Of a stretch of DNA of 64,000 bases, positions 1-35,948 are shown in pieces. Location: the sequence record NC_029316.1; one strand, 5' to 3'. The notes beneath the pieces were generated by a model. It was not told the DNA's origin. It did not search any database and saw only the letters and a list, made by a program, of their open reading frames with translations. The position numbers and the translations under genes were made by a program. Position 1 is the first letter of the stretch. Each line of letters opens with the position of its first letter.

Positions 1-111
1 CTGATTGACGACAGCCATGTTTTAGTGAAGGTCTATGAAGACGATCAACCGATTTTCACCATTAAGTTTCAGCTTAATGGTGAAAAGTTAGAAGTTGTTG
101 AGGCGTGGTAA
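1..111 (+). CDS. 3' end of a small hypothetical protein, paralog of 39116-39373
   Basis: Frame 1 reads LIDDSHVLVKVYEDDQPIFTIKFQLNGEKLEVVEAW*, which aligns by eye with VIDSDTMLIKVYGGDEPTFTIKARLVGGKLEVVDVR. Confidence 0.75.
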   Translation: MIDDSHVLVKVYEDDQPIFTIKFQLNGEKLEVVEAW

Positions 112-135
112 CATGGAAAAGCGGGGCGAAGATCC

Positions 136-519
136 GTGGAAAAAGAAATTAGTTTATTGTTAAAAATAATAAAATTCCTCCTAAAGAGCAAAAAGGAATT
201 TGAGGTTACCTATGAAGAAGGTGAAGGAGAGAAGTATGAGGAGGAAGATTTCAAAAAATTTTATTCTCCTTCTATCGAGCTAGAAATTAAGAGCGAAAAT
301 GCACTCAAACACGATATTATAGAAATGTTGGAGAAAAATGGATTTTATTTGGCTAACGGAGCTGAGAATATCGATGTTTATGAAAAGGAAATATATGAAA
401 GGACAGGGAAGAAAAGGAAGGTTGCTGTAAGGTTAGTAATCGAAGTGCATTATGATGATGATGATGTATATAAAATTGTCATTTTTGTGAAAAAATTAAT
501 ATGGAGTATAAAGAGTTGA
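136..519 (+). CDS. Hypothetical protein, paralog of 44617-45006
   Basis: 127-aa ORF; shared motif (N/L)GFY(L/P)xNGAEN with the 44617 ORF. Confidence 0.7.
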   Translation: MEKEISLLLKIIKFLLKSKKEFEVTYEEGEGEKYEEEDFKKFYSPSIELEIKSENALKHDIIEMLEKNGFYLANGAENIDVYEKEIYERTGKKRKVAVRLVIEVHYDDDDVYKIVIFVKKLIWSIKS

Positions 520-564
520 CTTTCTCCACTTAATTTATTCTCTTTTTCTAATCGGGGAGGTAGT

Positions 565-1203
565 ATGATAAATGAGAGATGGGACACGGAGAATAGACTA
601 TCGCAGTATATCCCGCTATATCTTTTGCGATTTACTCTACCTAGCAAGTTTTTAGCTAAGGAAAGGACAAGTGTTGACAAAAAGGAAGACTACACTAACA
701 TATTAATTACTATCAACAACGCGTTGGCATCTAAGCTAGAGTCAATAAGACGATCGGTGTACGAAGAAATAGGAAAGGGTTTTGTATACATAGAGTTGAT
801 GGGTTGGATAGCTGTAGACGATAATGGAGTAAATCACGCTAATATTGCCAATAAGAGGATAGTTGATGAATTAACAAAGGTCGTAGAGAGCGGAAAAGTG
901 ACTTTCAGGGACGGCAGAGTTATCTTAATCCCACCACAACTCATTGAGAAATTAAGGAGAACTATAGCAAATCATTATTACGTAAAAGCGATTAGGATAC
1001 TGGTAGACTATGATAACGCTAAGGAGATAATAGAGCAGGCGTTAAGTCAGCTGAGGGAAGGAATTGAGACTTTACAACAGAAAATTCAGGAAGCTGAAGC
1101 TGAGAAGAAATTAGCATCGCTCAGGAAATATCAGTCTGACAGACAAAAAATTGAAAGACTGTACGAGTCGTTTCTCGATTTCTATAAGGCTAGATTCTCC
1201 TAA
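565..1203 (+). CDS. Hypothetical protein with C-terminal coiled coil
   Basis: 212-aa ORF, SD-like GGGGAGGT upstream. Confidence 0.75.
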   Translation: MINERWDTENRLSQYIPLYLLRFTLPSKFLAKERTSVDKKEDYTNILITINNALASKLESIRRSVYEEIGKGFVYIELMGWIAVDDNGVNHANIANKRIVDELTKVVESGKVTFRDGRVILIPPQLIEKLRRTIANHYYVKAIRILVDYDNAKEIIEQALSQLREGIETLQQKIQEAEAEKKLASLRKYQSDRQKIERLYESFLDFYKARFS

Positions 1204-1241
1204 TTTCTGTAATCACACCTGTGTTCTCGGGGTGGTGTTTT

Positions 1242-1379
1242 ATGGAAATAAGTGAAATAAATGAGCATATAAAAGAATTAGATAAATTGGTAAGTTCAGG
1301 TAACATAAAGGATGCGTTATTTTTAGTTCAAGTAATATATGCAGAGCTATACAATATATATAAGGTTTCTGTGAGGTGA
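1242..1379 (+). CDS. Small 45-aa protein directly upstream of the Tas-like gene (not in ORF track)
   Basis: GGTGGTG SD then ATG: MEISEINEHIKELDKLVSSGNIKDALFLVQVIYAELYNIYKVSVR*; its stop overlaps the SD (GAGGTGA) of the next gene. Confidence 0.6.
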   Translation: MEISEINEHIKELDKLVSSGNIKDALFLVQVIYAELYNIYKVSVR

Positions 1380-1385
1380 GCAAAA

Positions 1386-2417
1386 ATGAGTGAGGTAGAC
1401 CTCGTACATTTAAAAGACCTAGTGGAGTTCAGGGACGACATAATAAAGTTAAGAGTAGCGTTAGGAAACAGGATAGGTGCTAAAAAAGAGAACAATAAGT
1501 GGGTATTCCTAAGGAGATATTCAGTATGCAACAACCATCATATGATATTACTCAAGGAAGACGAAAAACGCGATAAGTGTCCCCTCTGCGGTCAGCCCGT
1601 CAAAATTATTGAAGAAACACCATCTAATGACCTCATAGAGAGGTTTATGGATCTGCTCAGACAACAAGAGATAGTTGAAGGGCTTATTGGTAACGCTGTT
1701 ACGAAATTCCCAGAATTTACTAATTTCTTGGCGTTTATTCGAGGAATAGGATCTGCTAACGCTGGAAGACTTCTCGTTTATGCATACCCACCAAAGTTTC
1801 AGTACAGCATCAATAAATTCAGGAAGTACGCTGGTTTAGCCGTGATGTTCCAGTGTCCTAAATGCGGATATTATTATTACGCTGGTGAGTCCTCAAATGG
1901 TAAACCTGCCCTTCCATCAAAAGACGGTTGGCTGTGTCCAAATGACGGTACGAAACTTATTGGTACGTCAGCGAAGAACGTCAAGTACAATAGGACTGTT
2001 AAGACATTTTTACTAGGAATTCTGGCTAATAACCTCATACTGGCAGGCGGTGTTTATGCAAAGATAATAAAATCATTTAAAGAAGAAATAGCATCTAAGC
2101 ACCCAGACTGGAATAAGCTAAGAGTACAGAGGACTGCGATTAGGAAAGCAATATCCTTATTGATATCACAATACTTTGCTATCTCTTTACATTACCGCGA
2201 AGGAGTACCATTACCTGAGGCTTACAAAGTAGTGTTGGGGAAAGAATACGAAATCCTCAGAAAGCACGAAGATTTCATTGAATCGCCAATTACAGACTAT
2301 TACGTTGACACGAAGACTGTAAAATATAAAGCTAAGTTTGAAAAGATATTGGAAGAATTAGGTATAAACAGAGAGGAGGTGACAACATGGCTGAAGAAGA
2401 AAAAGATTATTAAGTAA
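1386..2417 (+). CDS. tasA: TIGR-associated Nop-domain protein (TasA-like; IS110-related, no RuvC), with two Zn-ribbon insertions
   Basis: IS110/Nop hallmarks: coiled coil LKDLVEFRDDIIKLRVALGNRI, HhH-like FIRGIGSANAGRLL, KFRKYAGL, KYNRTVKTFL and C-terminal QRTAIRKAISLL. No N-terminal DEDD domain. Inserts CNNHH..CPLC and CPKC..CPND. A dual-spacer array starts 1 nt after the stop. Confidence 0.8.
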   Translation: MSEVDLVHLKDLVEFRDDIIKLRVALGNRIGAKKENNKWVFLRRYSVCNNHHMILLKEDEKRDKCPLCGQPVKIIEETPSNDLIERFMDLLRQQEIVEGLIGNAVTKFPEFTNFLAFIRGIGSANAGRLLVYAYPPKFQYSINKFRKYAGLAVMFQCPKCGYYYYAGESSNGKPALPSKDGWLCPNDGTKLIGTSAKNVKYNRTVKTFLLGILANNLILAGGVYAKIIKSFKEEIASKHPDWNKLRVQRTAIRKAISLLISQYFAISLHYREGVPLPEAYKVVLGKEYEILRKHEDFIESPITDYYVDTKTVKYKAKFEKILEELGINREEVTTWLKKKKIIK

Positions 2418-2418
2418 C

Positions 2419-3346
2419 TGCACATAAGCAATATAGTTCGTCAATAATTGCCGTCCTGCACACGAGCAAAAAGTACGCTCAATAAACGCGATATTGCACA
2501 CAAGCAACATATACGTTCAATAAGATACCCATTGCACATAAGCAATCAGCTATTTCAATAATTAATGTACGTGCACACAAGCAACCTGATTGTTGATAAA
2601 AATACCAACTGCACACTAGCATTCTATCCTTTCCCTAAGGACTTAGTTGCACACTAGCAAAATATCCATTCAATAATATTTATATTGCACATAAGCAACA
2701 GGTCTATTCAATAATAAATACGTTGCACATAAGCAAGCTAATAATTCAATAACGATATCTTTGCACACGAGCATTATCATTCCTCAATAACCGTGAAGTT
2801 GCACAAAAGCAATAAAGAGTTTCAATAAAATTGCTCATGCACACAAGCAAGAGAAAACTTCAATAAAGACGTTTATGCACACAAGCAAAGATACAATTCA
2901 ATATCGAAAGATATGCACATAAGCAATCAGCTATTTCAATAATTAATGTACGTGCACACAAGCAATTGCTATGCTCAATAATAGTCGAATTGCACACAAG
3001 CAAAATAATCATTCAATAAACACCTTATTGCACATAAGCAATAAGTATAGTCAATAAACACCCCACTGCACACAAGCAATAACATTATTCAATAATATTT
3101 ATATTGCACATAAGCAAGAAATATCTTCAATAAAAATCACCCTGCACACAAGCAATGAGGTAAGTCAATAACAATCTACCTGCACACCAGCAAAGATAAA
3201 GATCAATAAAAAAAGTTTTGCACATAAGCAACCAGGCTATTCAATAAACCGCATATTGTACACAAGCAAATATAAAGTTCAATAACGGCAAACTTGCACA
3301 TGAGCAAGGGTTGGTTTTCAACAAGAATCCTATTGCACACCTGCCC
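2419..3346 (+). repeat. TIGR-like dual-repeat/dual-spacer array, 24 units of 38 nt (25 edge repeats, the last degenerate)
   Basis: Unit = TGCACAYAAGCAA (13 nt) + 9-nt spacer A + TCAATAA (7 nt) + 9-nt spacer B. Edge repeats at 2419, 2457, 2495, 2533, 2572 ... 3257, 3295, 3334; three units are 39 nt because one spacer is 10 nt. Confidence 0.92.
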
Positions 3347-3369
3347 TTCCAGAGCGGGGAGGAAGTCAG
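3340..3369 (+). mobile_element. IS200/IS605-type right-end remnant
   Basis: CCTGCCCTTCCAGAGCGGGGAGGAAGTCAG: GC hairpin + GGAGGAAGTCAG, typical of Sulfolobales IS605 ends; near copy on the minus strand at 39066-39094. Confidence 0.6.
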
Positions 3370-3371
3370 AA

Positions 3372-3821
3372 ATGGGCAAATTTGATAAAGAATTAATAGA
3401 TATGGTTAAAAAATTAATACAAAAATCTTCTAGTAGCCCATACACAAAAGTAGGTCTTAGCATTTCTGATGAGCATAGGCTACAAAAAATCGACCCTGAG
3501 CTCTATAAACAATATTATGACACAAAAATGATGATAGAAAAGAACAGGGCTGAATTCAAAGAAAGTATTCTTAAATTAATTGATGATATTAATAATGGAA
3601 TTCTAGATAAATATGGTGCAAGGGCGATTTTAGATAGGTTCGATGAGAACGCCATCAACCACCCAGGGTACTATTGCATATCAATAAAAATGAAGAGATT
3701 GCCACGTGAGCAGTTTACAGAGCTTGTTAACAAACTTAAGCAAATAGGGTTCAAGTTTAACGGCTATAATTGGGAATACTGTGATATTATTGGCAATTAT
3801 CCGCGTTTGAGAAAGTCTTAA
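3372..3821 (+). CDS. Hypothetical protein (149 aa)
   Basis: Start moved from 3294 (inside the array) to ATG 3372, which follows a GGAGG SD. Confidence 0.7.
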   Translation: MGKFDKELIDMVKKLIQKSSSSPYTKVGLSISDEHRLQKIDPELYKQYYDTKMMIEKNRAEFKESILKLIDDINNGILDKYGARAILDRFDENAINHPGYYCISIKMKRLPREQFTELVNKLKQIGFKFNGYNWEYCDIIGNYPRLRKS

Positions 3822-3871
3822 AACCGAAGAATCGTAAAAAGCTGAGATTAACGTTTTATATAATTTGGTAC

Positions 3872-4138
3872 CTAATTCTGAATCGTTTCGTTCTCCACTA
3901 TGTCGTCCCCATAATATTCTCTCAATTCATTTATTACAACTTTAGCTATGTCGTCCCCATAATATTCTTTCACCTTTTTGATAAGCTCCTTCAAGTCGTC
4001 ATATATTTCTGCGAAATCACCGTCAATAGTAAAGTTGACTAGTATATATTTACCATCAGTGGTCGGTATTACCATTAGACCTTGATCAATGTTTCTGATT
4101 TTAACTTCAAATGGCAGGAATTTAATTGTTAGATACAT
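3872..4138 (-). CDS. Hypothetical protein with short internal repeat (KEYYGDDI x2)
   Basis: ORF track; MYLTIKF start preferred. Confidence 0.65.
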   Translation of the reverse strand: MYLTIKFLPFEVKIRNIDQGLMVIPTTDGKYILVNFTIDGDFAEIYDDLKELIKKVKEYYGDDIAKVVINELREYYGDDIVENETIQN

Positions 4139-4307
4139 TTTCCTTCCCAAGGATTATGTTTGTTTTAAGTTTTTAAAGATAGTAGTTGTGGGCTAGCTCT
4201 ATCATGATTGAAGTGTAGGGACAAACGGAAATCGGGGGTGTTGTTTCAAATGGAAGAAATTGAAAAGTTAAAAAAGTTGAATGGAAAGGAGACAAAAAAG
4301 GTGATGG

Positions 4308-4565
4308 ATGGTGAAGGTTAAGATACCATATAAATTCCTAGAGGAAAATACATGGTGCGATAGTGACTACTATGGTTGTAGTGGTAGTTGTAGCCACTGC
4401 TATCCGTATGCTGAGAATACTGTTTATGAAGCAGATATTGACGACGTCAAGTTTGATAGAATTGACCTGGAAGATATAGTTGATGAGTACTTAGATGACA
4501 TTATAGATATACTAATGACGAAACATAGGAAGGAATTAGAAAGGAGGATGAACAATGGAACGTGA
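4308..4565 (+). CDS. Small Cys-rich, acidic hypothetical protein
   Basis: CDSDYYGCSGSCSHC cluster; GGTGA SD. Confidence 0.65.
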   Translation: MVKVKIPYKFLEENTWCDSDYYGCSGSCSHCYPYAENTVYEADIDDVKFDRIDLEDIVDEYLDDIIDILMTKHRKELERRMNNGT

Positions 4566-4890
4566 AGACTTTATAGAATACCTTGCAAATTCTGCGTCAG
4601 CTATATTTGACCATAATCAGACAAAGAAGCTTATCGATTATTTTCTCTCGATCTATGGATTATACAAAATGAGAGGGGTTACCATGTCTGCTGATAAGAT
4701 TTACAGATACATTATTAGATCTGTAAAACTCCCATATAGACAACAAGTAATCTTGTACAGCATTTTTTCCGATTATAGTATGCTGACACATGAAGAGAAA
4801 GGAAAATTTTTATACGTACTTATAGAAAAAATGATAGACAAGTTATTGGAGGGTGCTGATGAAGCGGATAATAAACCTCGCATATTCTAG
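4555..4890 (+). CDS. Hypothetical protein
   Basis: 111-aa ORF overlapping the previous stop. Confidence 0.65.
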   Translation: MEREDFIEYLANSASAIFDHNQTKKLIDYFLSIYGLYKMRGVTMSADKIYRYIIRSVKLPYRQQVILYSIFSDYSMLTHEEKGKFLYVLIEKMIDKLLEGADEADNKPRIF

Positions 4891-5117
4891 GGAAGAACTA
4901 AAAGTGCCGACTAAAAGTTTATATTTTTCGGGAAAGAAGTTAAAATAAGGAAGAACTAAAAGATGGGGAGAGCGGGAGGGGTCGTCGTAGCGGGAAGTTG
5001 CCCCGCCTCTTCCAAGGGCGGGGTAAAATTTTAGTTGAAATAAGGAAGAACTGAAATAAAACTAAATGGGAATACTCAACATTCCACTATATAGTTGAAA
5101 TAAGTAAGAACTGAAAG
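4881..5117 (+). CRISPR. Candidate virus-borne mini-CRISPR array (3 full 24-nt repeats + 1 degenerate)
   Basis: GTTAAAATAAGGAAGAACTAAAAG 4939-4962, GTTGAAATAAGGAAGAACTGAAAT 5034-5057, GTTGAAATAAGTAAGAACTGAAAG 5094-5117, partial ending 4904; spacers 34, 71 and 36 nt; 3' GAAAG as in Sulfolobales repeats; no cas genes in the window. Confidence 0.6.
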
Positions 5118-5171
5118 ATGTCAGCTCTAGTTATTCGTTTTTATAAAGGGTGAATTGGTATTTTTCTCGGG

Positions 5172-5951
5172 GTGTTAAATGTGGAAAGTCCTTCCCCTTC
5201 TCCTTATACTGTCTCTAAAGAAGCAATGAACTTTCTCAATGTTTTCTTTTCAAATAAGCCGATAAAAAACGAGAAGGTTATAATAAACGCTCTTAAAAAT
5301 GGGTTTGTAAGCAGTGTTATCCTTGATATATCTCCTAATGCGTTAAGCGAATTTGAGGATATCATAAAGAAATATTTTGATGTAGACCTTATCGACGACG
5401 AATATTACAAAACTGTAGAGCTGGGTATTATAGCGATGGTAATAACACTACTGGCTCATAGAGTAAGGTTAATTGAACTGCAAGATTTAGCCGAACCGCT
5501 AAATAAATACGCTTCTTACCTTTCATCACTAAGGTTTAAAGCACCTAAAAAGGACGTAATGCCATTGTTAGCCCTAGGTCTTGTAACTGAAGAAGGTGGT
5601 GGGTTCTATAAGGTTACTGGTCTTGCATTGTATCTCATTAATTTTTTATTAACAGTAAATATGAGCATCACATTACCTAAGGCATGCCTGAAAGAGCTTA
5701 TTGAAGATTTGAATAACATACTGTTGTTTCATAAATTTATGGTCGAACGTGTGACTAGCTTGCTTTATGAAGCACCTTGGTCATTGTATTCAGCGTATCA
5801 CGGTTCCAGCAGTTACGATGACTTAATGGCTGAGCTTGATTTCGAAAGCATATTAAATACGCTAAATCTATTGAGGGAAAAACTAAAACCACCGTACAAA
5901 TATGAAATACCAGTAATTATGGGAGAAAGGAAACTTTCTCAATTAATTTAA
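5172..5951 (+). CDS. Hypothetical protein
   Basis: 259-aa ORF, GTG start. Confidence 0.7.
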   Translation: MLNVESPSPSPYTVSKEAMNFLNVFFSNKPIKNEKVIINALKNGFVSSVILDISPNALSEFEDIIKKYFDVDLIDDEYYKTVELGIIAMVITLLAHRVRLIELQDLAEPLNKYASYLSSLRFKAPKKDVMPLLALGLVTEEGGGFYKVTGLALYLINFLLTVNMSITLPKACLKELIEDLNNILLFHKFMVERVTSLLYEAPWSLYSAYHGSSSYDDLMAELDFESILNTLNLLREKLKPPYKYEIPVIMGERKLSQLI

Positions 5952-5966
5952 AACGGGGCGAAAAAA

Positions 5967-6848
5967 ATGAAAGTTGAACTAGTTTCTTATACAAAAGATG
6001 GAGAAAGAGTTGTTGCCATTGCTTCTAAGATGAGCAGGTCTAGAAAGGGTTGGGATTACCACGAGAAGACAATGACGGATGAGGAAGTAGAAGTATGGAT
6101 CCGTGACGCTATCATTCACGGCTATTGGTCACCACTAGAACACAGTAGTTATACCTTCTCAATAGAGGGTATAAGCAGAGTTGCCTCTCATCAGCTAGTG
6201 AGACACCGCATTGCATCATACACTCAAATGAGCCATAGGTTTGCTAAGCCCGTTGATGAGTACTACCAACCAGTAACTCCGCCTTCTGCGGAAAAGAGGA
6301 ACGAGGAACTAGTTAAGAAGGCTTACGACGACGCTTACAAATACTACTACGAGCTATTACAGAACGGTGTTCCAGAGGAAGATGCCAGATACGTCCTACC
6401 TAATGGAGTAAATACAAACATCGTTGTGACAATGAACGCCAGAGAGTTATACAACTTCTTTGCCCTAAGACTATGCTCAAGAGCACAGTGGGAAATACGT
6501 CAAGTTGCTTGGAAAATGCTAGAAGAAGTAAAGAAAGTCCATCCCCGTCTATTTAAGTATGCTGGGGCTAATTGTATAATATTAAACAATTTAACTAGTG
6601 ACAGACTGATGACTGTAGAGAACGTCCTTAACGGAATATGGAGATTTGAGATTAGCAGGTGTCCAGAAGGCGTATATCGTGATGGAATACCTAAGTGCAT
6701 ACTTTCCAGCATGGGTCTTGCTGACCTATATCAGTGCATTCATGACTGCAAAGTTCATTTTGGCGACCCTGGTGACGACGACAGTGGTTGCATAGCCTGG
6801 TGTAAGAAAAAGTACGCTGACGGCTTCATAGGACAAGGTGGGGCATGA
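5967..6848 (+). CDS. thyX: FAD-dependent thymidylate synthase ThyX
   Basis: ThyX signature [14 protein letters not shown]; HWSPLEH-like GYWSPLEH; EDARYVLP; [23 protein letters not shown]. Confidence 0.95.
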
Positions 6849-7507
6849 TGGTTTCAGTAGTAGATTTAATAAAAGAACATTTAGATTTTTTAAGCATAAA
6901 ATATATTATAACTAGAGAAGCCGATACAGAATTCACTTTTCATCTCGATTACATCTCTAAAAACAAAGTTAATGTACTGTCAAAAATACTAAGCGAGAAC
7001 GGATTTTTTGTGACTTTCAATAATAGTCAATACATAGTAATGATGGATAAAAATGGGCAACGTGTAAGTTTTATGTTTGGTGATGATTTGCTGTATAAAA
7101 TAAGGGTTTATACTACAGCAAAGCCTAAGCATTTTGCAGTAAAGGTGCATAGGTTAAGGAGTGTTAGGGTACAATATAGAGACGATATTGTTGAACACAA
7201 CAACATTATAATTACATTAAAGATCTCAAAGAAAATCAAGGATTTGCTTATTTTATATTCACGCAAAATAGGTAAAACTGCTGGCGAATTAATACGCTGT
7301 ACGCTTGCTAATACTATTTTAAAAGAGTTTGATGCCGATTACGATGATAAGAAGCTTCTTGACGGTGATATTAGTGTGTTGTCGTTAAAGATAAATAAGA
7401 AGTTGTTAGAGAAGCTCGACAATTTTGCAACAAATCATAAAGTTACGAGGTCTGCAGTGGTAAGGTACATAGTGTACTTGATACTTAAAAACGCAGGAGT
7501 ATTCTAA
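6845..7507 (+). CDS. Protein with two C-terminal ribbon-helix-helix-like repeats
   Basis: [13 protein letters not shown]...TAGELIR and [17 protein letters not shown]...[10 protein letters not shown]. Confidence 0.65.
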
Positions 7508-7552
7508 CGGTTTTTTCTTCTGCAAACACAGATGTGATTTCGGGGAGAAGCC

Positions 7553-8044
7553 ATGCTCCAAAATATGTTGTTAAAAAATATAAATACCCCTCCTAAGGAG
7601 GAAATAGAGAAATTTAGGCAAATGCTGTTTTTTAAGGTAGCTGAATGCACTAAAGATAAAAATTTTGCTAAGTGTGTTATCAACAATATAATTGAGAATC
7701 TGAAGTACATAGACGTTTCTATTCTTTTATACCCACAAACAAAGCGTAAGTGTAGGATGATAAAAGGTTTTGAAAACTCCCAGGCTGAGGTTATAAAATA
7801 CGACGACGAGCCTTATTTACTCTGCACGGACGTCCTTTTAGTTTACAAGCTACCAGATAGCATAATGACGTTATTATTTACGCTTTCAGGCAACGAGATT
7901 ATATCATCCTATGTAGTTTCTAATATTCCGCAATTGCCTTTAAAGATAGAGGTACCTTTTAATATAGAGGTTGTTGGGGACAACCATATATATACTGTGT
8001 ATAGAAGAAACTCTTCATATGGGGTGAAAATAAATGAAGAATAA
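7553..8044 (+). CDS. Hypothetical protein
   Basis: 163-aa ORF. Confidence 0.65.
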   Translation: MLQNMLLKNINTPPKEEIEKFRQMLFFKVAECTKDKNFAKCVINNIIENLKYIDVSILLYPQTKRKCRMIKGFENSQAEVIKYDDEPYLLCTDVLLVYKLPDSIMTLLFTLSGNEIISSYVVSNIPQLPLKIEVPFNIEVVGDNHIYTVYRRNSSYGVKINEE

Positions 8045-8450
8045 CGGTGTAGAATTACTCATCATCTTGCCTAGAAATAATTGCACCATAAAGAAGAACA
8101 AGTATCTCAGCTACGTAATAAAAGATAACAAATGTTACGTTTATCTTGTCTATTCTAACAAGTATTATCTTACTACCTCTTTACCTTCTAACCTCATCTT
8201 AAACGGTAGAGAAGCTACAAAAATTTTGCACCACATGCTGAATAAGAGCGATGAGGAACTGTATAACGCTATCCTCTCGTCTGGGGATACGGCAAGTAAA
8301 AAGACTTATAGAATAAACCTTACAGTATCTCCTATAGTTGCTCCAAAGTTATTCAAACTAGCCTTCATGTTCAATGTAAAAATTTCTACAATCATCCGCA
8401 TGTTAATATTATCATATTACCGTTCCACGACGATAAAGTTAGCACCTTAA
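8034..8450 (+). CDS. Hypothetical protein with C-terminal RHH-like motif
   Basis: YRINLTVSPIVAPKLFKLAFMFNVKISTIIRMLI. Confidence 0.55.
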   Translation: MKNNGVELLIILPRNNCTIKKNKYLSYVIKDNKCYVYLVYSNKYYLTTSLPSNLILNGREATKILHHMLNKSDEELYNAILSSGDTASKKTYRINLTVSPIVAPKLFKLAFMFNVKISTIIRMLILSYYRSTTIKLAP

Positions 8451-8495
8451 TTTTTTATGCACTATTTTTCTCACATTTTGGATAATATTACTCCT

Positions 8496-9392
8496 TTATT
8501 TCTTTCTATAGAATATCAGGATTTTGCCATTTTTGTTAGTTAAACTAAAACCGAGTTCTTCTACTTCTTTTATAGGTGGCTTCTTATGGTATTCCATTAT
8601 TATCTTCTCAAAATACTTAAGTGACTCCTTCTCATGTCTCAGTATATCGTACTCACAACCTTCACAGTCCATCTTTATCATGAACGGGTTATCTAATTCT
8701 CTAACTAAATCGCTTATCGTAACGCTCTTAACTGCGATACCTGACCCCTTCGGTCTAACATAGACTCCTGCACTGCCTACGGCGTCATGATCCTTAATTT
8801 TCACTACACGGGATTCATAATTTATTATTGCATTCAGTATCCTTACTCTGTTGTTTAATTCGTTTAGCTTGATATTTTCTAATGCAATGTTATAAGGAGT
8901 CGGTAAAGGTTCTATTCCCAGAACTTTACTTGCACCCCATAATGCAAAGAAGATAGGCGAATCACCTATTCCTGCACCTATATCAACTACGTCTCCTTTG
9001 ATTTCTCTAAAGTCGTTATAAATTTGCTCATCAAACACCTCGTGGATAGTTTGCTCTAGGGCTAATTTTCCCTTATAATACTTAAGTAACTTGACAGAAC
9101 CTAAATCTAGATTTTTATACATATAATTATCTTTAGTCTTCCATTCATGGTACTTTAGAAAACATAATATAAAACATTCAAGCGGAGTTTTACATTCTCC
9201 TTCGCAGTCTTCTATTTCTCTCGGGTACTCACGCATTTCCCTGTAGTACTCACTCAACGCTTTTAGTGCAGGTGCTGATAAATATACTGTCCTACCATTT
9301 CTTAACTCAGCCTTTGACTTTCTATTCAATATAACATTAAAAAGTACTTCTGGATAGTTTTTATATACCATAACAAATTTCCAGATATCCAT
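8496..9392 (-). CDS. FkbM-family SAM-dependent methyltransferase
   Basis: VVDIGAGIGDS motif I, KVLGIEP, IKMDCEGCEY; ATG 9392 lies about 30 nt after TTTAAATA. Confidence 0.85.
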   Translation of the reverse strand: MDIWKFVMVYKNYPEVLFNVILNRKSKAELRNGRTVYLSAPALKALSEYYREMREYPREIEDCEGECKTPLECFILCFLKYHEWKTKDNYMYKNLDLGSVKLLKYYKGKLALEQTIHEVFDEQIYNDFREIKGDVVDIGAGIGDSPIFFALWGASKVLGIEPLPTPYNIALENIKLNELNNRVRILNAIINYESRVVKIKDHDAVGSAGVYVRPKGSGIAVKSVTISDLVRELDNPFMIKMDCEGCEYDILRHEKESLKYFEKIIMEYHKKPPIKEVEELGFSLTNKNGKILIFYRKK

Positions 9393-9497
9393 TGCAGGTG
9401 AAATGGATTGCGAGTATTTAAACAGATTTCGCACTTTTGCAGAACTTCAACGGGGAGGAGGTCAGTTATTATACTCTGTTTGGAGAAACGGAAAAGC

Positions 9498-10355
9498 TCA
9501 CCCTAACATGTCTAATTTATTCTTCACAGTGTTAATAACATATTCTACTTGGTTTTTTATCGAATCTGTAATATCTTTTACTACCTTATCTTCTACTTTA
9601 ACGTGCTTACCATTAATGGTCACATTTTCCCCTTCAATTTCAATTTCATAATCGTTTGTCTTTATCTTTGATTGTAGGACTAAATTTATTACCTTAGATA
9701 AAATACGCCTTGAATATTTATCGATACCAATCTCAATTCTGAAAGCTTCTTTAGGTTCATCGTTACCTTGTTTTTTGTAAATAGTGAGTGTATCTCCATA
9801 AGTGTATGAAACATTATAAATATACTCTGGAGTGTAAGCCCAATAACCGTTCAACTTAGGATTTCTAAATTCATATTGGTAATATATAATAACTTTATCA
9901 AAATCTAACGTAAAGTGACAGGATGAGAAATTGTTCTTGACATAAGAGAGTATAGTATCGAAAAGTTTGTCTATCAAATTTATCATTTTATTGTTGTCTA
10001 CTGTTATCTCTTCACCATTAATCTTTGCCTCAGAAGAAGCTTTAGTGTATGTTAAATCCACTGAATTACCAAACTTACTTAAAATCTTCATAATCTGTTG
10101 TGAAAAATTAGAATTATCAATATTTCGATTAACCAATACAAAACTTCCCAACTCATAATCGTCCACGCTTACCTTATAACCATTTTTGTTTATAGTGAAT
10201 GTAATATCTCCACCATCATATTCTAATCTAAGGAAAAGTATCTCGTCTGGAAGTACGTTGTAACGGATAACAGATGTATATAGATCATTCTTTGCTAAAA
10301 ATGCATTTTTTTCCCGTATTTGTTGCTTATTTTCGTCCCAGAATTCCTGTGCCAT
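9498..10355 (-). CDS. Hypothetical protein
   Basis: 285-aa ORF with TATA-like TTTAATAA upstream. Confidence 0.75.
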   Translation of the reverse strand: MAQEFWDENKQQIREKNAFLAKNDLYTSVIRYNVLPDEILFLRLEYDGGDITFTINKNGYKVSVDDYELGSFVLVNRNIDNSNFSQQIMKILSKFGNSVDLTYTKASSEAKINGEEITVDNNKMINLIDKLFDTILSYVKNNFSSCHFTLDFDKVIIYYQYEFRNPKLNGYWAYTPEYIYNVSYTYGDTLTIYKKQGNDEPKEAFRIEIGIDKYSRRILSKVINLVLQSKIKTNDYEIEIEGENVTINGKHVKVEDKVVKDITDSIKNQVEYVINTVKNKLDMLG

Positions 10356-10448
10356 TTTTATACCATGTTTCTATTCTCAAACAGTTATTAAATATATATT
10401 TTTGTTATAGTATCCCAGCTTCTACGTTTAATCTTTCTGGGGGTTAAG

Positions 10449-10753
10449 GGGGCGGAAGTCCCCCTCCGTAAGGTGGGGGATGGATAGCCACCTTATAGAA
10501 ACCTTTTATACTAAAAAAGAGATAATTCTTAGACCTCTGGCTGTAAGAGCTGAGGTCGTACCCTCGGGACTGGGGGAACTTACGCCTGTGGAGAGTGACC
10601 CTCCGTAACCCCTCTTCCACACGGGGCATTACAGAACGGTTCCGTTCGATGGAACCTCCGCTGTGGGTGAAGGGGGATCGAGGTTGCTCTGAGAAGCAGG
10701 AAATCCTCACCGTGAGGTGGGGATGCCCCGTCCGTGAGGGCGGGGTAGTTCAC
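10449..10753 (+). mobile_element. Non-autonomous IS200/IS605 derivative (PATE-like): left end + tnpB 3' end/omegaRNA-like right end, no ORF
   Basis: TTAAG at 10444, left hairpin CCCCCTCCGTAAGGTGGGGG, then CGCCTGTGGAG...GAAGCAGGAAATCCTCACCGTGAGG...CCCCGTCCGTGAGGGCGGGGTAGTTCAC. Confidence 0.75.
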
Positions 10754-10882
10754 TCATGAGCGAACATAAAATGATTGAGATGAAAGTGTATGAACAAACG
10801 GTTAGCCTAAGATAGTTAAGATTTTATACACTATTTTTCTCATATTTTGGATAATATCTCTATTATATTAGAATCAATAAAA

Positions 10883-11152
10883 TTAAAACATAATCTCTTC
10901 ATTCTCTTCTTCGCTTTCATTATCATTTCCATTATTAGTAATTTCTCTAAAAGAAGAAATGGCAGAAGAGATCTGGTTGTTTACCATTATAAAATGAGGT
11001 GCATCTATGTCCAAACACCTTATTTTTTTGTTTCCTATTTTTCTGCAGTTGAACGTAGAAACTGAGTCGTAAATTTGATTTATAAGCGTGGGAGTATCGC
11101 TTTCTATCTCCAGAACTCTTTTTATTATATCATAACTGGTGCTTATCTTCAT
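10883..11152 (-). CDS. Small hypothetical protein, acidic C-terminus
   Basis: ORF track; ATG 11152 follows the conserved GGTCTCAGGTGTCAAAG leader. Confidence 0.65.
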   Translation of the reverse strand: MKISTSYDIIKRVLEIESDTPTLINQIYDSVSTFNCRKIGNKKIRCLDIDAPHFIMVNNQISSAISSFREITNNGNDNESEEENEEIMF

Positions 11153-11182
11153 CTTTGACACCTGAGACCAAGCCCGCTTCCC

Positions 11183-11659
11183 CTATAGCGTGTTGGGTAT
11201 AATACCCAATACCATTAATATGTATATTACTTGTGCAATTCCTACTATGCTGTCTATTACACCTATGAGATATATTGCTTGAGTTGCTATTGCTAACCCA
11301 GAACTGGAAATTACTGTGGTTGCCCATACCAGGAACCAGTCAAGGTTTCCAAATATTAGCGAAGCGTAAACTGCATACATGCTAGCTTGTATATAGCTTT
11401 CTACACTTGACGATAAGGATACGACGAAGGACACTATTGCACCTACTCCAGACAACGCTACTGACACGAATGGGTTGTGAAGTATATTGAAGAGGAAATT
11501 TAGGAGAGTCATTGATGAGATTGTTGCATAAACGCTTGGTGGTATTGAGGTTTGTATGCAAGGTATTAAGTTTACTAGGATATTTATAGCAAGCCCAGCT
11601 ATTGTTACGCCCTCACCAGCTAGGAAAACGCTATTTACAAGGTTATATAGTATTCCCAT
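11183..11659 (-). CDS. Multi-pass membrane protein
   Basis: 158 aa, nearly all hydrophobic helices. Confidence 0.7.
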   Translation of the reverse strand: MGILYNLVNSVFLAGEGVTIAGLAINILVNLIPCIQTSIPPSVYATISSMTLLNFLFNILHNPFVSVALSGVGAIVSFVVSLSSSVESYIQASMYAVYASLIFGNLDWFLVWATTVISSSGLAIATQAIYLIGVIDSIVGIAQVIYILMVLGIIPNTL

Positions 11660-12590
11660 ATTTCTTAATAAGAAATGATGAGATTAAAAATTGAGTCAAT
11701 GAATACACTCCAGGGCTTGATAATAATACCATTATATTCCTGCTAATGAAGAACGTTACTATAAGTACAAGTATACTAATTAAAGGTAATGTAATTGAAA
11801 CATTGTACTCTCTATATTTCTTATATCTTATCAACTTCTTTGCGTTATCTATAGCTAAGAAAGAGAACGCAGTAAAGAACACAGCCAAACCTAGATAGAA
11901 ATAAAACGGAGTTAGTGCAACACCGATCAACATTACGCCTATTGCTAACTTCTTAGGGTTCTCATCTATTCTATTTGTAGTTTCACTCAGTTCGTTTATT
12001 GTCTTAATGCCCTTATTGAATACGAAGAATAGTGGGGAAGGGTTGAATATGCTCGCTATTATGCACTGAGTCCTTCCTTTTATTAATCCTAATATATTAT
12101 TAGGATATAGTTTTAGGTTCTCTATAAAGAAATTCTTATCAAAGCCTGGCTTAACAAATCCAGGTTTTAGAAATATGAGTCTTGCTATTACGTAAATGTA
12201 ATAGCTTACAAGCAGGTTCCCAGAGATAAGCGAAAGTGAAAGTAAAATGTTGGGGATTGTGTAAAAGTACTTTAGCATACGGTCATCTGCAACGTTAACG
12301 TAAATATCCGTGAAAGTGAAAATGAACACTGCAGGGAGATAGCACAATAACGAATGAATTAACAATAACGACACAAACGAGAAAAGAGTGTAAAAATATA
12401 ACATGCAGACCTTCTTCTCATATCTTAGCTTTACTGCATTCAACGGCATTAAATGTGTTGATAATGATTCTGCAGTATTAATTATAAGTAATTCTGACAA
12501 AATATCTGGATATTTTACAAGTACAAATATGTATACGACAAAAGAAATTAACAGCACGATTAGTTTCAACACAACAAGCTTCAATAGCAT
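11643..12590 (-). CDS. Multi-pass membrane protein
   Basis: 315 aa, many hydrophobic segments. Confidence 0.7.
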   Translation of the reverse strand: MLLKLVVLKLIVLLISFVVYIFVLVKYPDILSELLIINTAESLSTHLMPLNAVKLRYEKKVCMLYFYTLFSFVSLLLIHSLLCYLPAVFIFTFTDIYVNVADDRMLKYFYTIPNILLSLSLISGNLLVSYYIYVIARLIFLKPGFVKPGFDKNFFIENLKLYPNNILGLIKGRTQCIIASIFNPSPLFFVFNKGIKTINELSETTNRIDENPKKLAIGVMLIGVALTPFYFYLGLAVFFTAFSFLAIDNAKKLIRYKKYREYNVSITLPLISILVLIVTFFISRNIMVLLSSPGVYSLTQFLISSFLIKKYGNTI

Positions 12591-12769
12591 AATGAACTAA
12601 CGAAATGTGTGTTTAAAAACGGATACGCTGATTGGTTGGATAAATATCGAACCATATACTAAAAATTTAGCGTCATTTTTTGAAGAAAAAGTTCGAAGTG
12701 GTATATAGTACAAAAAGTTCGAAGTTAGAACCAGCTATTGCTTAACCCCACACCAGCGAGGTTTTCTGG

Positions 12770-13171
12770 CTATTGCGTTATTACTCTAGGCAATGCAGAT
12801 ACAGAGTTGTTATACTCGAAGGGTAACTGAAAGGTGTTATTTACTTTGATTAACTTTGGGAGGATATATTGTGAAACAAATTGTAGCCCTGCCTGAATTG
12901 CGAATACTTCTGGGGCAACGTTAGCCATTTCACTTTCTGAAATAAATTCTGGAAGTTTATTCACTATATCTAAAGTTACATTAACAAGTTTAGGTAACTT
13001 AGATATCGGTACAGCCTGCTCTGTTCTTTTAGTTAATTCCTCTAAAAATGTCTGGTTTACCTCTGGTACTGCTTGCTGTATAAATGATATAGTAATTGTT
13101 TTGTATTCGTCAGGCAAGGAATTGACTATTATCGAAAAATTATTCACAGCCCTTTCAAACAAGTTTTCCAT
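12770..13171 (-). CDS. Hypothetical protein
   Basis: 133-aa ORF with TATA-like TTTTATT upstream. Confidence 0.7.
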   Translation of the reverse strand: MENLFERAVNNFSIIVNSLPDEYKTITISFIQQAVPEVNQTFLEELTKRTEQAVPISKLPKLVNVTLDIVNKLPEFISESEMANVAPEVFAIQAGLQFVSQYILPKLIKVNNTFQLPFEYNNSVSALPRVITQ

Positions 13172-13208
13172 AACAATGGCTAACAGTGCTAGAATAAAAG
13201 CGTTCCGC

Positions 13209-14840
13209 TTATGTTGAGATCTTAGTTAGGAGTTCGCCCTTTATATCTTCTAACATTCTCTTTTTAAAATCATTAATGTCAGCAGACGTAACTAAGCCAG
13301 CGTTATTAAGCATTCTTTTGAAGAGTGCTTTGCTCATATTGTCTTCAATACCGTTATTATATGCAACATATACGTCATAGACGTCACTGATGATTGTTGC
13401 TATGAGCGGTATTGCAGACTGTAGTTTCTTCTGTATTTCCAGCTTTTTCTGCATATCCAACATGTTTATCATATCTTTATCATAAAGCGATACAATTTTC
13501 CTAATCAGCTTGAATACGGGTTTATTAACACCGTAAAGACCGAAGTTGAATAACTGGAAATCGCTCAGTTTTCCTTCTTTGCTTAATATGTTAAGTAAGG
13601 TGTCAACGTGGATTATTATATCATTACTTTCTACAGTTATAACATCCTTCACATGAGTTGGGATTTTCTTAATGCTTATAAGTGCGTTAGATAAAAACCT
13701 GATTATCATTTCTGCCTCGTTCAGCATCTTATCATTAAATGTAGGTTGGACTACTTTAGGCAATAGGTCACGGATTATGTTAAGGATCTTCTTTTGCAGT
13801 ATGCTTATCCCCTCCTCACGTGACTTTATATAGAGCGGGAAATATTGCTCGTCTGGAATTATGAAAAACCACGAGATAGCCTTAGCTATGTTTACCTCAT
13901 CGTAATAACCGAGCATACGCAATAACGCAAGGGTAGGCGGTAACAATTGCAACTTCCTCATTGACGACTTTACAGGAAACAATACTTCTCTATCCCCAAC
14001 ATATTTTTTAAATATATCCGCAAGAGGTTTAGATAGTTCGTCAACCGTAATTTTGATTAACCTATTTTCCCCTATTTTATCCATGTTGAACGCAGAATAG
14101 ATTTTCTTAGCTATCAAAATGTCAGTTTGGTTAACTTCAGATAACGCTACTCTTGCAAGCTCTATTATTTCTTCTCTATCCAATTTAGGCTTCTTACTAT
14201 TGACAGTAATTGGAATAACTTCAACATTACCGTCACCATCATCAAGTTTTCTATTTAATATCTCAACACCCTTCTCATACACAGCTTCAAATTCATCCGA
14301 GTTCGGTGGAAAAGTAACGATAGAATACGTGAACCTATCATAAACTGCGTCAAACTTACTATCTAAGTTAACAAAATTTGTAGCCCCGACAACAGTTAGC
14401 GTTCTCGTCTTCATTTTAGCTGTTATTTGGTCTATGAAAAATTCCCTATCAAGAAGATATGAGAGAATTGAGTGTAGCATTATATCATTAGCCCTACCTA
14501 TCTCATCTAAAAACGCTATATCAGCGTAACTTAACGATGAAGGATTTACCTCTACTTTATTCTCCTTAATCAGCTTTATCTGGTCTATATAGTAAAGTGA
14601 AGAAGACGGAAGCATGGTAGGAGTAAGGACGAGTTCCCCATAGCTAAGGTTTAGAGTCCTGCAGAACTCCTTTACTAAAGAACTCTTTGCCGTACCAGGG
14701 TATCCTATTAATAGCATATTCGCACCTAGCTTCCCTAGTACAAGAGAAGATGTAAGTGCAAGGACGTCTTCCTCCCTGTCTACAAACTTATTCGACAAAG
14801 ACAAAATTGCGTCCTTTAGTACACTCAATGAGTTCATCAA
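13209..14840 (-). CDS. moxR: MoxR/RavA-type AAA+ ATPase
   Basis: FVDREEDV N-terminus, Walker A GYPGTAKS, Walker B IAFLDEIGRA, VVGATN, AVYDRF, C-terminal SSMRKL. Confidence 0.85.
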   Translation of the reverse strand: MMNSLSVLKDAILSLSNKFVDREEDVLALTSSLVLGKLGANMLLIGYPGTAKSSLVKEFCRTLNLSYGELVLTPTMLPSSSLYYIDQIKLIKENKVEVNPSSLSYADIAFLDEIGRANDIMLHSILSYLLDREFFIDQITAKMKTRTLTVVGATNFVNLDSKFDAVYDRFTYSIVTFPPNSDEFEAVYEKGVEILNRKLDDGDGNVEVIPITVNSKKPKLDREEIIELARVALSEVNQTDILIAKKIYSAFNMDKIGENRLIKITVDELSKPLADIFKKYVGDREVLFPVKSSMRKLQLLPPTLALLRMLGYYDEVNIAKAISWFFIIPDEQYFPLYIKSREEGISILQKKILNIIRDLLPKVVQPTFNDKMLNEAEMIIRFLSNALISIKKIPTHVKDVITVESNDIIIHVDTLLNILSKEGKLSDFQLFNFGLYGVNKPVFKLIRKIVSLYDKDMINMLDMQKKLEIQKKLQSAIPLIATIISDVYDVYVAYNNGIEDNMSKALFKRMLNNAGLVTSADINDFKKRMLEDIKGELLTKIST

Positions 14841-14893
14841 AATGAATAATAAAAGAGGTAATTAAAAGCAGACATACAAAGAAAGGAGTTAAG

Positions 14894-15200
14894 TGAGTGG
14901 AAAGCTTCGCCAGGAGATGGATAACTCCTTATATTTAAGGAGGTGTTATATTTAATAGGACGAAAATGGTGGTAGCTAACAAGTTAACCGAAGAACAGAA
15001 AAAGATCCTAGAGAGGATGCATAACAGAGTAGATTATATTATCAAAGCTTACAAGGAATATTTAGATGCATTAGCAGAATTTGATAGAACTGGAGTATTG
15101 AAAATTCATGAGAAAGTCCTTTATGTAAGAAAATATAATAATCAAGAAAATGAGCCACCCAAATGAGAAATGTAAGCCCGATGAGGGGAACTCCCTAGAG
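14894..15200 (+). mobile_element. SMN1-like non-autonomous element (IS605-type left end + small ORF); right boundary approximate
   Basis: TTAAG 14889 + TGAGTGGAAAGCTTCGCCAGGAGATGGATAAC left end, 66-aa ORF, about 300 bp; right end eroded. Confidence 0.45.
14966..15166 (+). CDS. Small protein carried by the non-autonomous element
   Basis: MVVANKLTEEQKKILERMHNRVDYII...; resembles small ORFs in Sulfolobus mobile elements (from memory). Confidence 0.65.
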   Translation: MVVANKLTEEQKKILERMHNRVDYIIKAYKEYLDALAEFDRTGVLKIHEKVLYVRKYNNQENEPPK

Positions 15201-15515
15201 CGTTAGCTTCCCTACCCTTGCTCTATGTATTATTCTGTTTTTATATTCATTAACTAGTTTCAATATTGCATTCCTTACTACCTCTGAACGTGTAACTCCA
15301 TTTTCCTCCGCAATTTTATCAATATAATCAAGAAGGTCTTTCGTAACGTAGAATATCACAACCTTATTCTTCTTTCCTCCGTCGTCTTCGTTAATAATAG
15401 GTATTTCTTCTTTTAACGCAACCCTAAGTGCTTGACTACGTGTCATACCGTTTTCTTCAGCGTATGCGTCAAGTAGCTCCAATATATAGTCCTCAAGCTT
15501 AACTGCAAGTTTCAT
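15195..15515 (-). CDS. Double ribbon-helix-helix (CopG-like) DNA-binding protein
   Basis: LAVKLEDYILELLDAYAEENGMTRSQALRVAL and VIFYVTKDLLDYIDKIAEENGVTRSEVVRNAI. Confidence 0.85.
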   Translation of the reverse strand: MKLAVKLEDYILELLDAYAEENGMTRSQALRVALKEEIPIINEDDGGKKNKVVIFYVTKDLLDYIDKIAEENGVTRSEVVRNAILKLVNEYKNRIIHRARVGKLTL

Positions 15516-15640
15516 CTTTTGACACCTGAGACCCCACCCTTACGGACGGGATAGTTACGCATGGAATCTCAAGTGTGCAAATTTAACGATTTTGCTTCGC
15601 ATGAAAACACAGATGTGATTTCAATAGAAGGAAAAAACAG

Positions 15641-19288: not shown

Positions 19289-19362
19289 AGTCAAAAGATA
19301 TAAATCTGAGCTAAAAAATCTAAAAGTGCTAAAACTATTGCTGGGGTTTAGGGGTTTGGGCT

Positions 19363-32124: not shown

Positions 32125-33192
32125 TCAAACCACCTTGAAATACTTAAACGCAGTTCCGTCAGGTAACTCATTTTCAAGTATCGTCTTGATAGAATAGAAA
32201 AGATCCCTATCTATCTCAACTTCCTCATTCTTCTTAACTTTCTCCTCAAGCTTATCTATAAATTTTCTAAAAGACACTAAGTCAACATATTTACAAAGTT
32301 CTTCCTTGTTAATATATTGCTGTTGAACTGCGTTACTGTTTTTCTCTATTCTCCTTTCTTCTTTCTTATTATCACTTTCCTTACGGTCGTCCTTATGGTC
32401 ACCACTTCTTTTCTTTTCTGTTTTCACACTCAATTTCTCTGTTTTTTTGGCTTTTTCTCTTTCTAATAATTCTCCAAGTTTTGACATAAATTCCCCAGCA
32501 TTCTTAGCATTTTTAAGTTCAGCATAATAATCTGTAATAACCTTGCGGATATTTGAGAAAATCAAATCTAAATCTTCATCAGTGAAATCATTGGCAAAAT
32601 TCTTAGTTAAACTCAGTAATTTCTCTATTTCCCTCTTATTAAATACTATTCCTTTCTTTTTCGTATAATTATAAATGTGGGGATAATGCGATTTTACCCA
32701 TAACACCATATATTTAACGTCGTCTATAGATACTTTCTTTTTTGTAATGTTTTGAAGTGTTTCCTCTATCTTCTTATCTATATCATTATCTATCCTCGCT
32801 GTTTGACTAGTTGATCCTCTGATCTTATATATCTCCTCAATATAATTAGTGAGTTCCTCGAGTTTCATCGGTCTTCTTATTACATTTAGAACGAGTGCTA
32901 ACAACTTTGCGGTTTGCGGATCCTTGGTTATTCTTAAGTCTGTATATTGAAGCGTGAGGACTTTAGAATATTCATCGCTCTCCTTAGCTAACTCTTTTAG
33001 TACTAGGTATCTCGTCATTCCGTCTATTATGTAATTGTCTGAGTCGACAACTATAGGTTCCCTTAACCCATCTTTTTTTATGCTTTCCTTTAGTTCCTCC
33101 ATTATACGTTGGTCTCTTGGGAATAAATTAAAAATAGGGTCGTATATTTTTAAATCGCCTAATCTCGAAACTTTAAGAAGAACATTATACAT
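32125..33192 (-). CDS. ParB/Srx-domain protein
   Basis: ELKESIKKDGLREPIVVDSDNYIIDGMTRYLVL is a ParB-like N-terminal motif. Confidence 0.8.
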   Translation of the reverse strand: MYNVLLKVSRLGDLKIYDPIFNLFPRDQRIMEELKESIKKDGLREPIVVDSDNYIIDGMTRYLVLKELAKESDEYSKVLTLQYTDLRITKDPQTAKLLALVLNVIRRPMKLEELTNYIEEIYKIRGSTSQTARIDNDIDKKIEETLQNITKKKVSIDDVKYMVLWVKSHYPHIYNYTKKKGIVFNKREIEKLLSLTKNFANDFTDEDLDLIFSNIRKVITDYYAELKNAKNAGEFMSKLGELLEREKAKKTEKLSVKTEKKRSGDHKDDRKESDNKKEERRIEKNSNAVQQQYINKEELCKYVDLVSFRKFIDKLEEKVKKNEEVEIDRDLFYSIKTILENELPDGTAFKYFKVV

Positions 33193-35937: not shown

Positions 35938-35948
35938 TTAATCCTCCT

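Follow-up and report, generated by a model that had tools for sequence, protein, structure and literature searches.

The dual-repeat TIGR-TasA systems, known from FpTasA of Flavonifractor plautii, place a solo Nop-type Tas protein beside an array of two alternating short repeats and 9-nucleotide (nt) spacers. The protein carries no nuclease domain, and both strands of the target DNA are read in tandem (PMC12045711). Here, we analysed a locus of the same kind in the Acidianus tailed spindle virus (ATSV), which comprises the tasA-type gene ATSV_B343 and the array directly behind it. The window, a stretch of 64,000 nt, belongs to the circular ATSV genome (KU645528.1, 70,812 bp, host Acidianus sp. 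CHAS), and its coordinates are those of the KU645528 record minus 6812. Since GenBank labels record positions 9232-10146 (window 2420-3334) as a repeat_region, and since the ATSV paper is referred to in the TIGR discovery work (Faure et al. 2025, PMC12045711), both as a previous record of a “similar array in an archaeal virus” and as an archaeal-virus example of TIGR, the array and its system are already known. Our analysis points to a candidate natural target for one family of its guides, and to re-pairing of guide halves between units. Both bear on the two questions that the TIGR papers left open, namely the natural targets and the way in which arrays gain or change spacers.

As a whole, the locus is best explained as a dual-repeat TIGR-TasA array directed at 18-19-bp sites, with a coding target for unit 24 and with half-guides that become re-paired; we put the probability of this reading at roughly 0.7. 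The array is probably transcribed together with the upstream gene, and the transcript is probably cut inside the edge repeats into tigRNAs of about 38 nt with two 9-nt spacers each, in analogy to the published TIGR systems. In a dimer of nuclease-free Tas, the two spacers would then pair with opposite DNA strands, and together they would recognise 18-19 contiguous bp of the form A + revcomp(B), i.e. spacer A followed by the reverse complement of spacer B. Binding without cutting would block transcription or other use of the DNA, as suggested by the published repression by TasA.

Silencing of this type has been observed for MbTasA and for catalytically dead TasR. Bound to a tigRNA, nuclease-free Tas reversibly silences a target gene in Escherichia coli, and the natural role proposed for it is to silence the host or to keep competing mobile elements in check (Xu et al. 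2026, bioRxiv 10.64898/2026.09.09.750476). Judging from the published TasA work, B343 may likewise act as a silencer. The MbTasA and dead TasR systems are stem-loop systems from CPR bacteria, studied with designed guides and with natural targets stated to be unknown (10.64898/2026.09.09.750476), whereas ATSV has the dual-repeat array of an archaeal virus and a candidate natural target. Over the coiled coil and the Nop domain, B343 is matched best, in profile and fold alike, by the nuclease-bearing TaTasR (PDB 9mty) and SpTasH (PDB 9w03 and others), which have the same target geometry as implied by the natural match of unit 24. They cut DNA with an N-terminal RuvC or HNH nuclease, whereas B343 begins directly with a coiled-coil helix.

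Other guide-carrying elements offer functional parallels. Type IV CRISPR-Cas systems on plasmids would resemble the ATSV system in that one mobile element carries guides against another and interferes without cutting its DNA. Mini-CRISPR arrays borne by Sulfolobales viruses are likewise guides of mobile elements against other mobile elements. The ATSV proteins and RNA architecture differ from both: there are no Cas proteins, and the guides consist of 2 x 9 nt directed at opposite strands. We know of no acquisition machinery.

Architecture of the array and its Tas protein

The features on which the analysis rests are the following.

1386-2417, + strand: tasA-type gene ATSV_B343, 343 amino acids (aa), 100% identical to KU645528 8198-9229, where it is annotated as “hypothetical protein”
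2419-3340, + strand: 24-unit dual-repeat TIGR array, closed by a truncated edge repeat and delimited by repeat parsing
3295-3333, + strand: unit 24 in its corrected parse, spacer A GGGTTGGTTT (10 nt) / loop TCAACAA / spacer B GAATCCTAT; kept in four distinct arrays and the sole guide for which a candidate natural target was identified

The array begins one base past the stop codon of tas, which makes co-transcription of the two likely. Starting at 2419, the units are spaced by 38 nt (twice by 39 nt), and each is composed of an edge repeat TGCACAYAAGCAA (13 nt), spacer A (9 nt), a loop repeat TCAATAA (7 nt) and spacer B (9 nt), with only three spacers of 10 nt. The first edge repeat has its full length, without 5' truncation, and the 3' end of the array is a shortened edge repeat (TGCACAC at 3334-3340), followed by non-repeat sequence. 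In RNA letters, the edge repeat starts with UG and ends with GCAA, and the loop repeat starts with UC and ends with UAA. In the published TIGR systems both repeats open with box D (UG) and close with box C (CCA); the ATSV layout is analogous, in letters that depart from the TasR consensus. The published TIGR repeats measure 8-12 nt; the ATSV edge repeat is 1 nt above this range and the loop repeat 1 nt below it. Compared with the FpTasA type, the ATSV unit is 38 nt and not 36 nt long with its repeats of 13 and 7 nt, the repeats end with CAA/UAA and not with CCA, and the loop repeat starts with UC and not with UG. The two spacers also have a composition of their own. Across all arrays examined, spacer A is rich in A at positions 2-4 (A at position 2 in 102/167) and spacer B is not, the last position of both is biased towards T, and G is nearly never found there in spacer B.

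B343 is a Nop/IS110-C-terminal-like RNA-binding protein with two zinc-ribbon inserts. A HMMER search retrieved 207 relatives, some of them with the IS110 C-terminal domain (Pfam Transposase_20). When a profile of 69 homologues was compared with the PDB, the best matches were TasR (9mty, E=7e-47), TasH (E=9e-28) and IS621/ISCro4 (~1e-5), and the AlphaFold model (pLDDT 93.9) likewise had TasR, TasH and IS621 as its best folds. B343 thus belongs to the Tas family and lacks a nuclease domain, as in the TasA subtype. The initial annotation had called the effector nuclease-less, and this holds because RuvC and HNH are both absent: the Pfam search of B343 returned neither (nor anything else useful for B343 itself), the fold-search matches of the model included no nuclease fold, and the alignment to TasR begins at TasR residue 112, past the TasR RuvC.

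The model opens with a coiled-coil helix (residues 3-30). Residues 32-77 and 154-194 form beta-rich inserts with conserved Cys/His, which we read as zinc ribbons and which set B343 apart from the FpTasA type; in the first insert H52, C65 and C68 are invariant and C48 is near-invariant. A remnant of an HNH domain was considered for the CxxHH...CxxC stretch and set aside for a zinc ribbon, on the evidence of Pfam, conservation, the model and the fold search. Of the processing dyad of SpTasH (Y289/H296), Y289 aligns with Y280 of B343 and the column of H296 holds K286, a further difference from the FpTasA type. An invariant histidine, H294, lies on the same C-terminal loop, 8 residues beyond K286.

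A Nop-domain coiled-coil dimer and an RNA with two short guides and box C/D-like flanks are also found in the archaeal box C/D small ribonucleoprotein (Nop5-fibrillarin-L7Ae). B343 differs from it in lacking the fibrillarin-binding N-terminal domain, and the ATSV repeats differ in lacking k-turn motifs. Moreover, the putative target of the ATSV family is double-stranded DNA with both strands read.

A candidate natural target for the guide of unit 24

Ten related arrays with 8 to 51 units each were fetched, nine from IMG/VR and one from the Sulfolobales virus YNP1. They have the same repeats as ATSV, and their Tas proteins are 72-89% identical. The guide set from the related arrays comprised 204 parsed units, 188 of them distinct, and the distinct ATSV targets numbered 23. 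Unit 24 is the most conserved guide, with variants in the relatives L003/L004 (units 9 and 27), L007 (unit 4) and L009 (unit 9).

To read a target from a unit, the two halves have to be joined, and the initial annotation had assumed the order B + revcomp(A). The published TasR cleavage leaves 8-nt 3' overhangs. Cuts placed inside each heteroduplex can yield such overhangs only when every spacer is bound to the 3' half of its strand, and the site should accordingly read B + revcomp(A); on the opposite strand this is the same as A + revcomp(B). The natural match of the unit 24 family has exactly this form, A + revcomp(B) without a gap, so that the assumed order proved right.

Metagenomes were scanned for A + revcomp(B) of unit 24, with a degenerate pattern admitting both alleles. 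More than 120 matches were listed, mostly chance, and among those listed were two homologous low-GC archaeal contigs (L146 and L057), in which the site lies inside the same 144-aa open reading frame (ORF). Two other low-GC matches (L059 and L140) were discarded as chance occurrences in unrelated repetitive DNA. L146 is archaeal chromosomal DNA, with genes for CTP synthase, PGM, pyrF, DUF2153, Trm112, LSM and Sulfolobus_pRN. It shares an identical LSM protein with the S. islandicus and S. solfataricus genomes, and a Saccharolobus metagenome-assembled genome (MAG) encodes a CTP synthase 81% identical to its own.

The matched gene encodes a membrane protein of 141-146 aa and lies directly downstream of the Sulfolobus_pRN (PlrA-type) regulator. 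Its 14 homologues all come from Sulfolobus/Saccharolobus or from metagenomes. In S. islandicus (CP001731.1) and Sulfolobus sp. SCGC AB-777_G06 the surroundings include SSV-type integrase fragments, DUF1286 and a DUF87 conjugation ATPase, the latter 44-52% identical to those of pNOB8-family plasmids, and the layout DUF1286 - PlrA - ORF - integrase is likewise seen on free plasmids. By this gene context, the candidate target gene resides in integrated pNOB8-like conjugative elements of Sulfolobus/Saccharolobus. Searches for a homologue in the “plasmids” and “phages” collections and, by peptide patterns, in GTDB genomes returned none, and the syntenic region of a Saccharolobus MAG is without the gene. 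PADLOC gave no defence-family match for the protein. One may speculate that it is worth silencing for a virus, for example if it has an exclusion function.

Guides and alleles vary together. Across seven alleles the site reads [ATA/ATG] GG[G/T/C] TGG TTT ATA G[G/T][A/G] TT[C/T], encoding (I/M)GWFI(G/V)F, and the site predicted for the unit 24 tigRNA is GG(T/G)TGGTTTATAGG(A/G)TTC. The guide of L007/L009 (GGG...GGA) matches L146 exactly (18/18), and that of L003 unit 9 (G-GGT...GGG) matches L057 exactly (19/19). A single mismatch separates unit 24 of ATSV itself (G-GGT...GGA) from L178, where the 5'-most base of spacer A is affected, and likewise L003 unit 27 (G-GGC...GGA) from L179. All variation among the guides falls on two synonymous third-codon positions; these are polymorphic in the target gene, where the same bases are used. 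Given the first match, the chance of such covariation is ~0.006 by our own arithmetic estimate. Two variants of the unit 24 type occur together in the array of L003, at 1570-1608 and 2256-2294 (same in L004), with the halves GGGTTGGTTT/GAACCCTAT and GGGCTGGTTT/GAATCCTAT. They fit two different alleles of the putative target gene, as if covering both.

These matches support a rival or host-resident element as the likely target class, for one guide family, and to that extent they agree with the initial annotation, which had proposed silencing of host or rival promoters. We tentatively propose that ATSV-type viruses silence the PlrA-adjacent membrane-protein gene of integrated conjugative plasmids, that the guide variants track its synonymous alleles, and that new guides arise via re-pairing; we regard this as possible, at a little below even odds. 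If true, a natural target and a diversification route would thereby be described for the first time in any TIGR system. As a candidate target in a rival integrated element, the site is a useful lead that can be tested in concrete terms, with a defined 18-19-bp sequence and a gene in the sequenced chromosome of Saccharolobus islandicus, a genetically tractable species.

Several observations weigh against our interpretation of the locus. A target was identified for one of the 23 distinct ATSV guides, i.e. for one family of 188, and ATSV's own unit 24 is one mismatch away from the closest known alleles. The genomes bearing the target belong to Sulfolobus/Saccharolobus, and the recorded host of ATSV is Acidianus. 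Because the search pattern was degenerate and the site was judged among the matches listed, the significance of the match lies in its taxon specificity and in the estimate of ~0.006, not in a formal database-wide test. In six free Sulfolobales conjugative plasmids (225 kb), sites in the right geometry were not in excess over sites in the wrong one (20 vs 18; re-paired controls 12-23). Finally, B343 has a lysine where TasH has its processing histidine.

Phage-encoded regulators of the phage's own genes or of relatives are common. The guides could control genes of ATSV itself, in a temporal program, or act on close relatives in superinfection exclusion. We found no evidence in support of this and consider it very improbable. 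As the initial annotation had noted by eye, there is no convincing self-target: the 70.8-kb ATSV genome holds no site at ≤2 mismatches, and at 3 mismatches 13 sites in the right geometry compare with 15 in the wrong one. When the 204 parsed units were compared with ~210 kb of family DNA (ATSV, YNP1 and the nine other relatives), no match was found at ≤1 mismatch, and the counts at 2 mismatches were 13 vs 8. Among 50,697 phage and archaeal-virus records, a search that recovered a control 18-mer, exact 18-mers of the 23 ATSV targets had no match in archaeal viruses and only chance matches in bacterial phages.

Exchange of half-guides between units

The arrays of the family retain traces of how they change. 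In ATSV, the traces are found in the following blocks.

2457-2532, + strand: units 2 and 3, AAAGTACGC/ACGCGATAT and CATATACGT/GATACCCAT, parents of a chimeric unit in the relative L009
2533-2584, + strand: unit 4 and the next edge repeat, a 52-nt block identical to 2914-2965
2914-2965, + strand: unit 14 and the next edge repeat, the second copy of the 52-nt block, identical to 2533-2584
2668-2698, + strand: 31-nt block of unit 7 (end of spacer A, loop, spacer B TATTTATAT and next edge repeat), common to unit 18
3087-3117, + strand: second copy of the 31-nt block, in unit 18, identical to 2668-2698

The initial annotation had suggested diversification by recombination between repeats. It had pointed to the identity of units 4 and 14, including their 10-nt spacer B, and to the spacer B common to units 7 and 18, both of which we confirmed and extended to the blocks above. 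In L003/L004, the counterpart of units 4 and 14 occurs a single time, with a 9-nt spacer B. A third observation, that units 16 and 17 share ACACC at the start of spacer B, is real, and such sharing is at chance level (1 pair vs 0.40 expected, P=0.33).

The clearest chimera is unit 13 of L009 (AAAGTACGC/GATACCCAT), which combines spacer A of ATSV unit 2 with spacer B of the adjacent unit 3. Such a unit is expected when a stretch of exactly one period (38 nt) is lost between two loop repeats. Unit 8 of L006 joins the A of ATSV unit 12 to the B of unit 1, with one mismatch per half. Spacer A of ATSV unit 18 (TAACATTAT), whose spacer B is the one also found in unit 7, recurs in L003 unit 12 with another B (ACTCATGAC), and L005 unit 9 combines spacer B of ATSV unit 10 with a different A. 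Exact identity of one half combined with an unrelated partner (≥5 mismatches) was found 6 times, compared with 0.40 expected by letter shuffling (200 shuffles, none with more than 2). Of these, 5 remain once the pair L010 units 22/26 is discounted, which carries indel variants of one spacer B. At ≤1 mismatch there were 43 half-matches vs 8.9 expected. Exact matches between an A and a B spacer were absent among the family arrays (0). The order of shared units is collinear in close relatives (L007/L009 and L012/L013) and scrambled between ATSV and L003.

The family arrays change over time through duplication and loss of units and through crossover within the loop (7 nt) and edge (13 nt) repeats. 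Re-pairing of half-guides by recombination between repeats, as it had been proposed for this locus, is well supported by the chimeric units across relatives, which far exceed both the shuffled and the cross-type controls. The published TIGR discussion treats the origin and expansion of arrays as unknown and suggests that short repeats minimise recombination. With halves being re-paired through the repeats, the array is less stable than had been assumed from its short repeats.

Free swapping of halves between units would also be expected if each 9-10-nt half acted alone on single-stranded DNA or RNA, similar to a box C/D small RNA. In that case recognition would not depend on the 18-bp site as a unit, and re-pairing would be neutral. 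The different positional composition of spacers A and B, with A-richness at positions 2-4 of the former, fits such independent halves, and so does the published ability of TasR to cut single-stranded DNA that matches one spacer only. We nevertheless consider this unlikely. The natural match runs contiguously over both halves, on opposite strands and without a gap; it does so in two independent variants (18/18 and 19/19), and published Tas proteins need both spacers for double-stranded DNA. Recognition of a joined 18-19-bp site by both halves remains our preferred interpretation.

Some of the related genomes have features of their own. L010 carries a second short array of five units at 10541-10730, ~2.6 kb downstream of its main array, and unit 26 in this second array has the same spacer A as unit 22 of the main one. 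In YNP1 (L002), a gene annotated as “putative Transcription initiation factor B” (35401-36405) shares its strand with the tas homologue and lies ~2.2 kb upstream of it; the ATSV annotation of record positions 1-18226, which span the genes upstream of tas, contains no gene so named. The repeat and guide matches of L008 (array at 6865-7170) are mirrored on both strands, and the IMG/VR contig is therefore probably a palindromic assembly artefact.

Promoter-like words, other guides and neighbouring genes

The joined targets of ATSV contain TATA-box-like strings, and the four quoted in the initial annotation were reproduced exactly. If the guides were aimed at TATA-box promoters of host or rival genes, the nuclease-free Tas could block the binding of TBP/TFB (TATA-binding protein and transcription factor B) and thus the initiation of transcription. 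At first sight the counts agree with this, with TTTATA/TATAAA in 4/23 distinct ATSV targets vs 0.5-0.9 expected (nominal P 0.002-0.007). However, three of the four words lie wholly within one 9-nt half, two of them stem from the same spacer, and the opposite join order of the halves gives just as many (3-4). The 188 distinct related guides show no enrichment, with 8-10 words vs 4-7 expected (P 0.07-0.15).

The composition of the spacers points in the same direction. Their 4-mer intergenic-vs-coding log-ratio is -0.07, compared with -0.13±0.04 for coding and +0.19±0.04 for intergenic 9-mers of these viruses, as delimited by crude gene calls. In k-mer content the spacers thus resemble the coding and not the intergenic DNA of these viruses. 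The one guide that could be traced, unit 24, matches a coding region, and the central TTTATA of its target represents Phe-Ile codons (TTT-ATA) in the middle of the gene, ~205 nt into a 435-nt ORF. Matches in coding regions were the outcome that the initial annotation had named as a refutation of its promoter reading, and for the single traceable guide this is what we found.

Two sites near genes could speak for promoters. In L179, an intergenic 2-mismatch site for unit 18 lies immediately downstream of the target gene. However, IMG/VR contains over 100 exact matches for each of the TATA-like targets of units 7 and 18, giant-virus bins included, and these targets carry so little information that 2-mismatch sites mean little. 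The second case is a guide of the relative L012 (unit 14, GAAAAAAGT/AATTTAAAA, also in L013), with an AT-rich 1-mismatch site in the plasmid pHVE14 (L414, 5526-5543) and a 2-mismatch site in pNOB8 (L413, 29590-29607), both at homologous gene boundaries. The guide is AT-rich and of low complexity, so the two sites may be chance.

Taken together, the promoter part of the earlier proposal is not supported, it is contradicted by the sole traceable guide, and we judge promoter targeting to be quite unlikely. For the most part, the TATA-like words result from the AT-richness of the spacers, a caveat that the initial annotation had itself raised, and from the preference for T at the last position of both spacers, which places a T|A step in the middle of the joined site. 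As a lesson for method, TATA-like words in AT-rich 9-nt spacers are no evidence of promoter targeting.

Outside the unit 24 family, the searches described here found no target for any guide. In the IMG/VR scans, unit 24 had 2 chance matches, in unrelated and more GC-rich sequence. Units 19, 20 and 4 matched unrelated phage families only, always with a gap except once (L031, unit 4, GC 0.44), and unit 23 had 1 match. A second candidate pair, ATSV unit 11 and L010 unit 8 on L178:11433 (2 mismatches), was rejected: the homologues read KEFEK or KEFKK in 13/13 cases and never have the Q/R predicted from the guides.

Beyond the array, the window includes several further features. At 4888-5117, four copies of a ~25-nt repeat (TAGTTGAAATAAGGAAGAACTGAAA-like) with a spacing of 58-95 nt form a mini-CRISPR-like array, labelled “possible viral CRISPR locus” in GenBank, with no cas genes nearby. 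A 429-aa ORF at 19363-20652 (- strand) matches transposase families (phrog_506) of the IS200/IS605-TnpB kind that are also present on Sulfolobales plasmids, and it adjoins a 1241-aa ORF at 15641-19366. The TIGR paper reports that TasA loci sometimes share operons with ParB homologues; in the ATSV window, a ParB-like protein with weak PHROG matches is encoded at 32125-33192 (- strand), 29 kb from tas. Two enzymes were recognised as well, a ThyX thymidylate synthase at 5967-6848 (Pfam E=1e-66) and a CCA-adding tRNA nucleotidyltransferase at 50023-51375 (PHROG E=9e-82).

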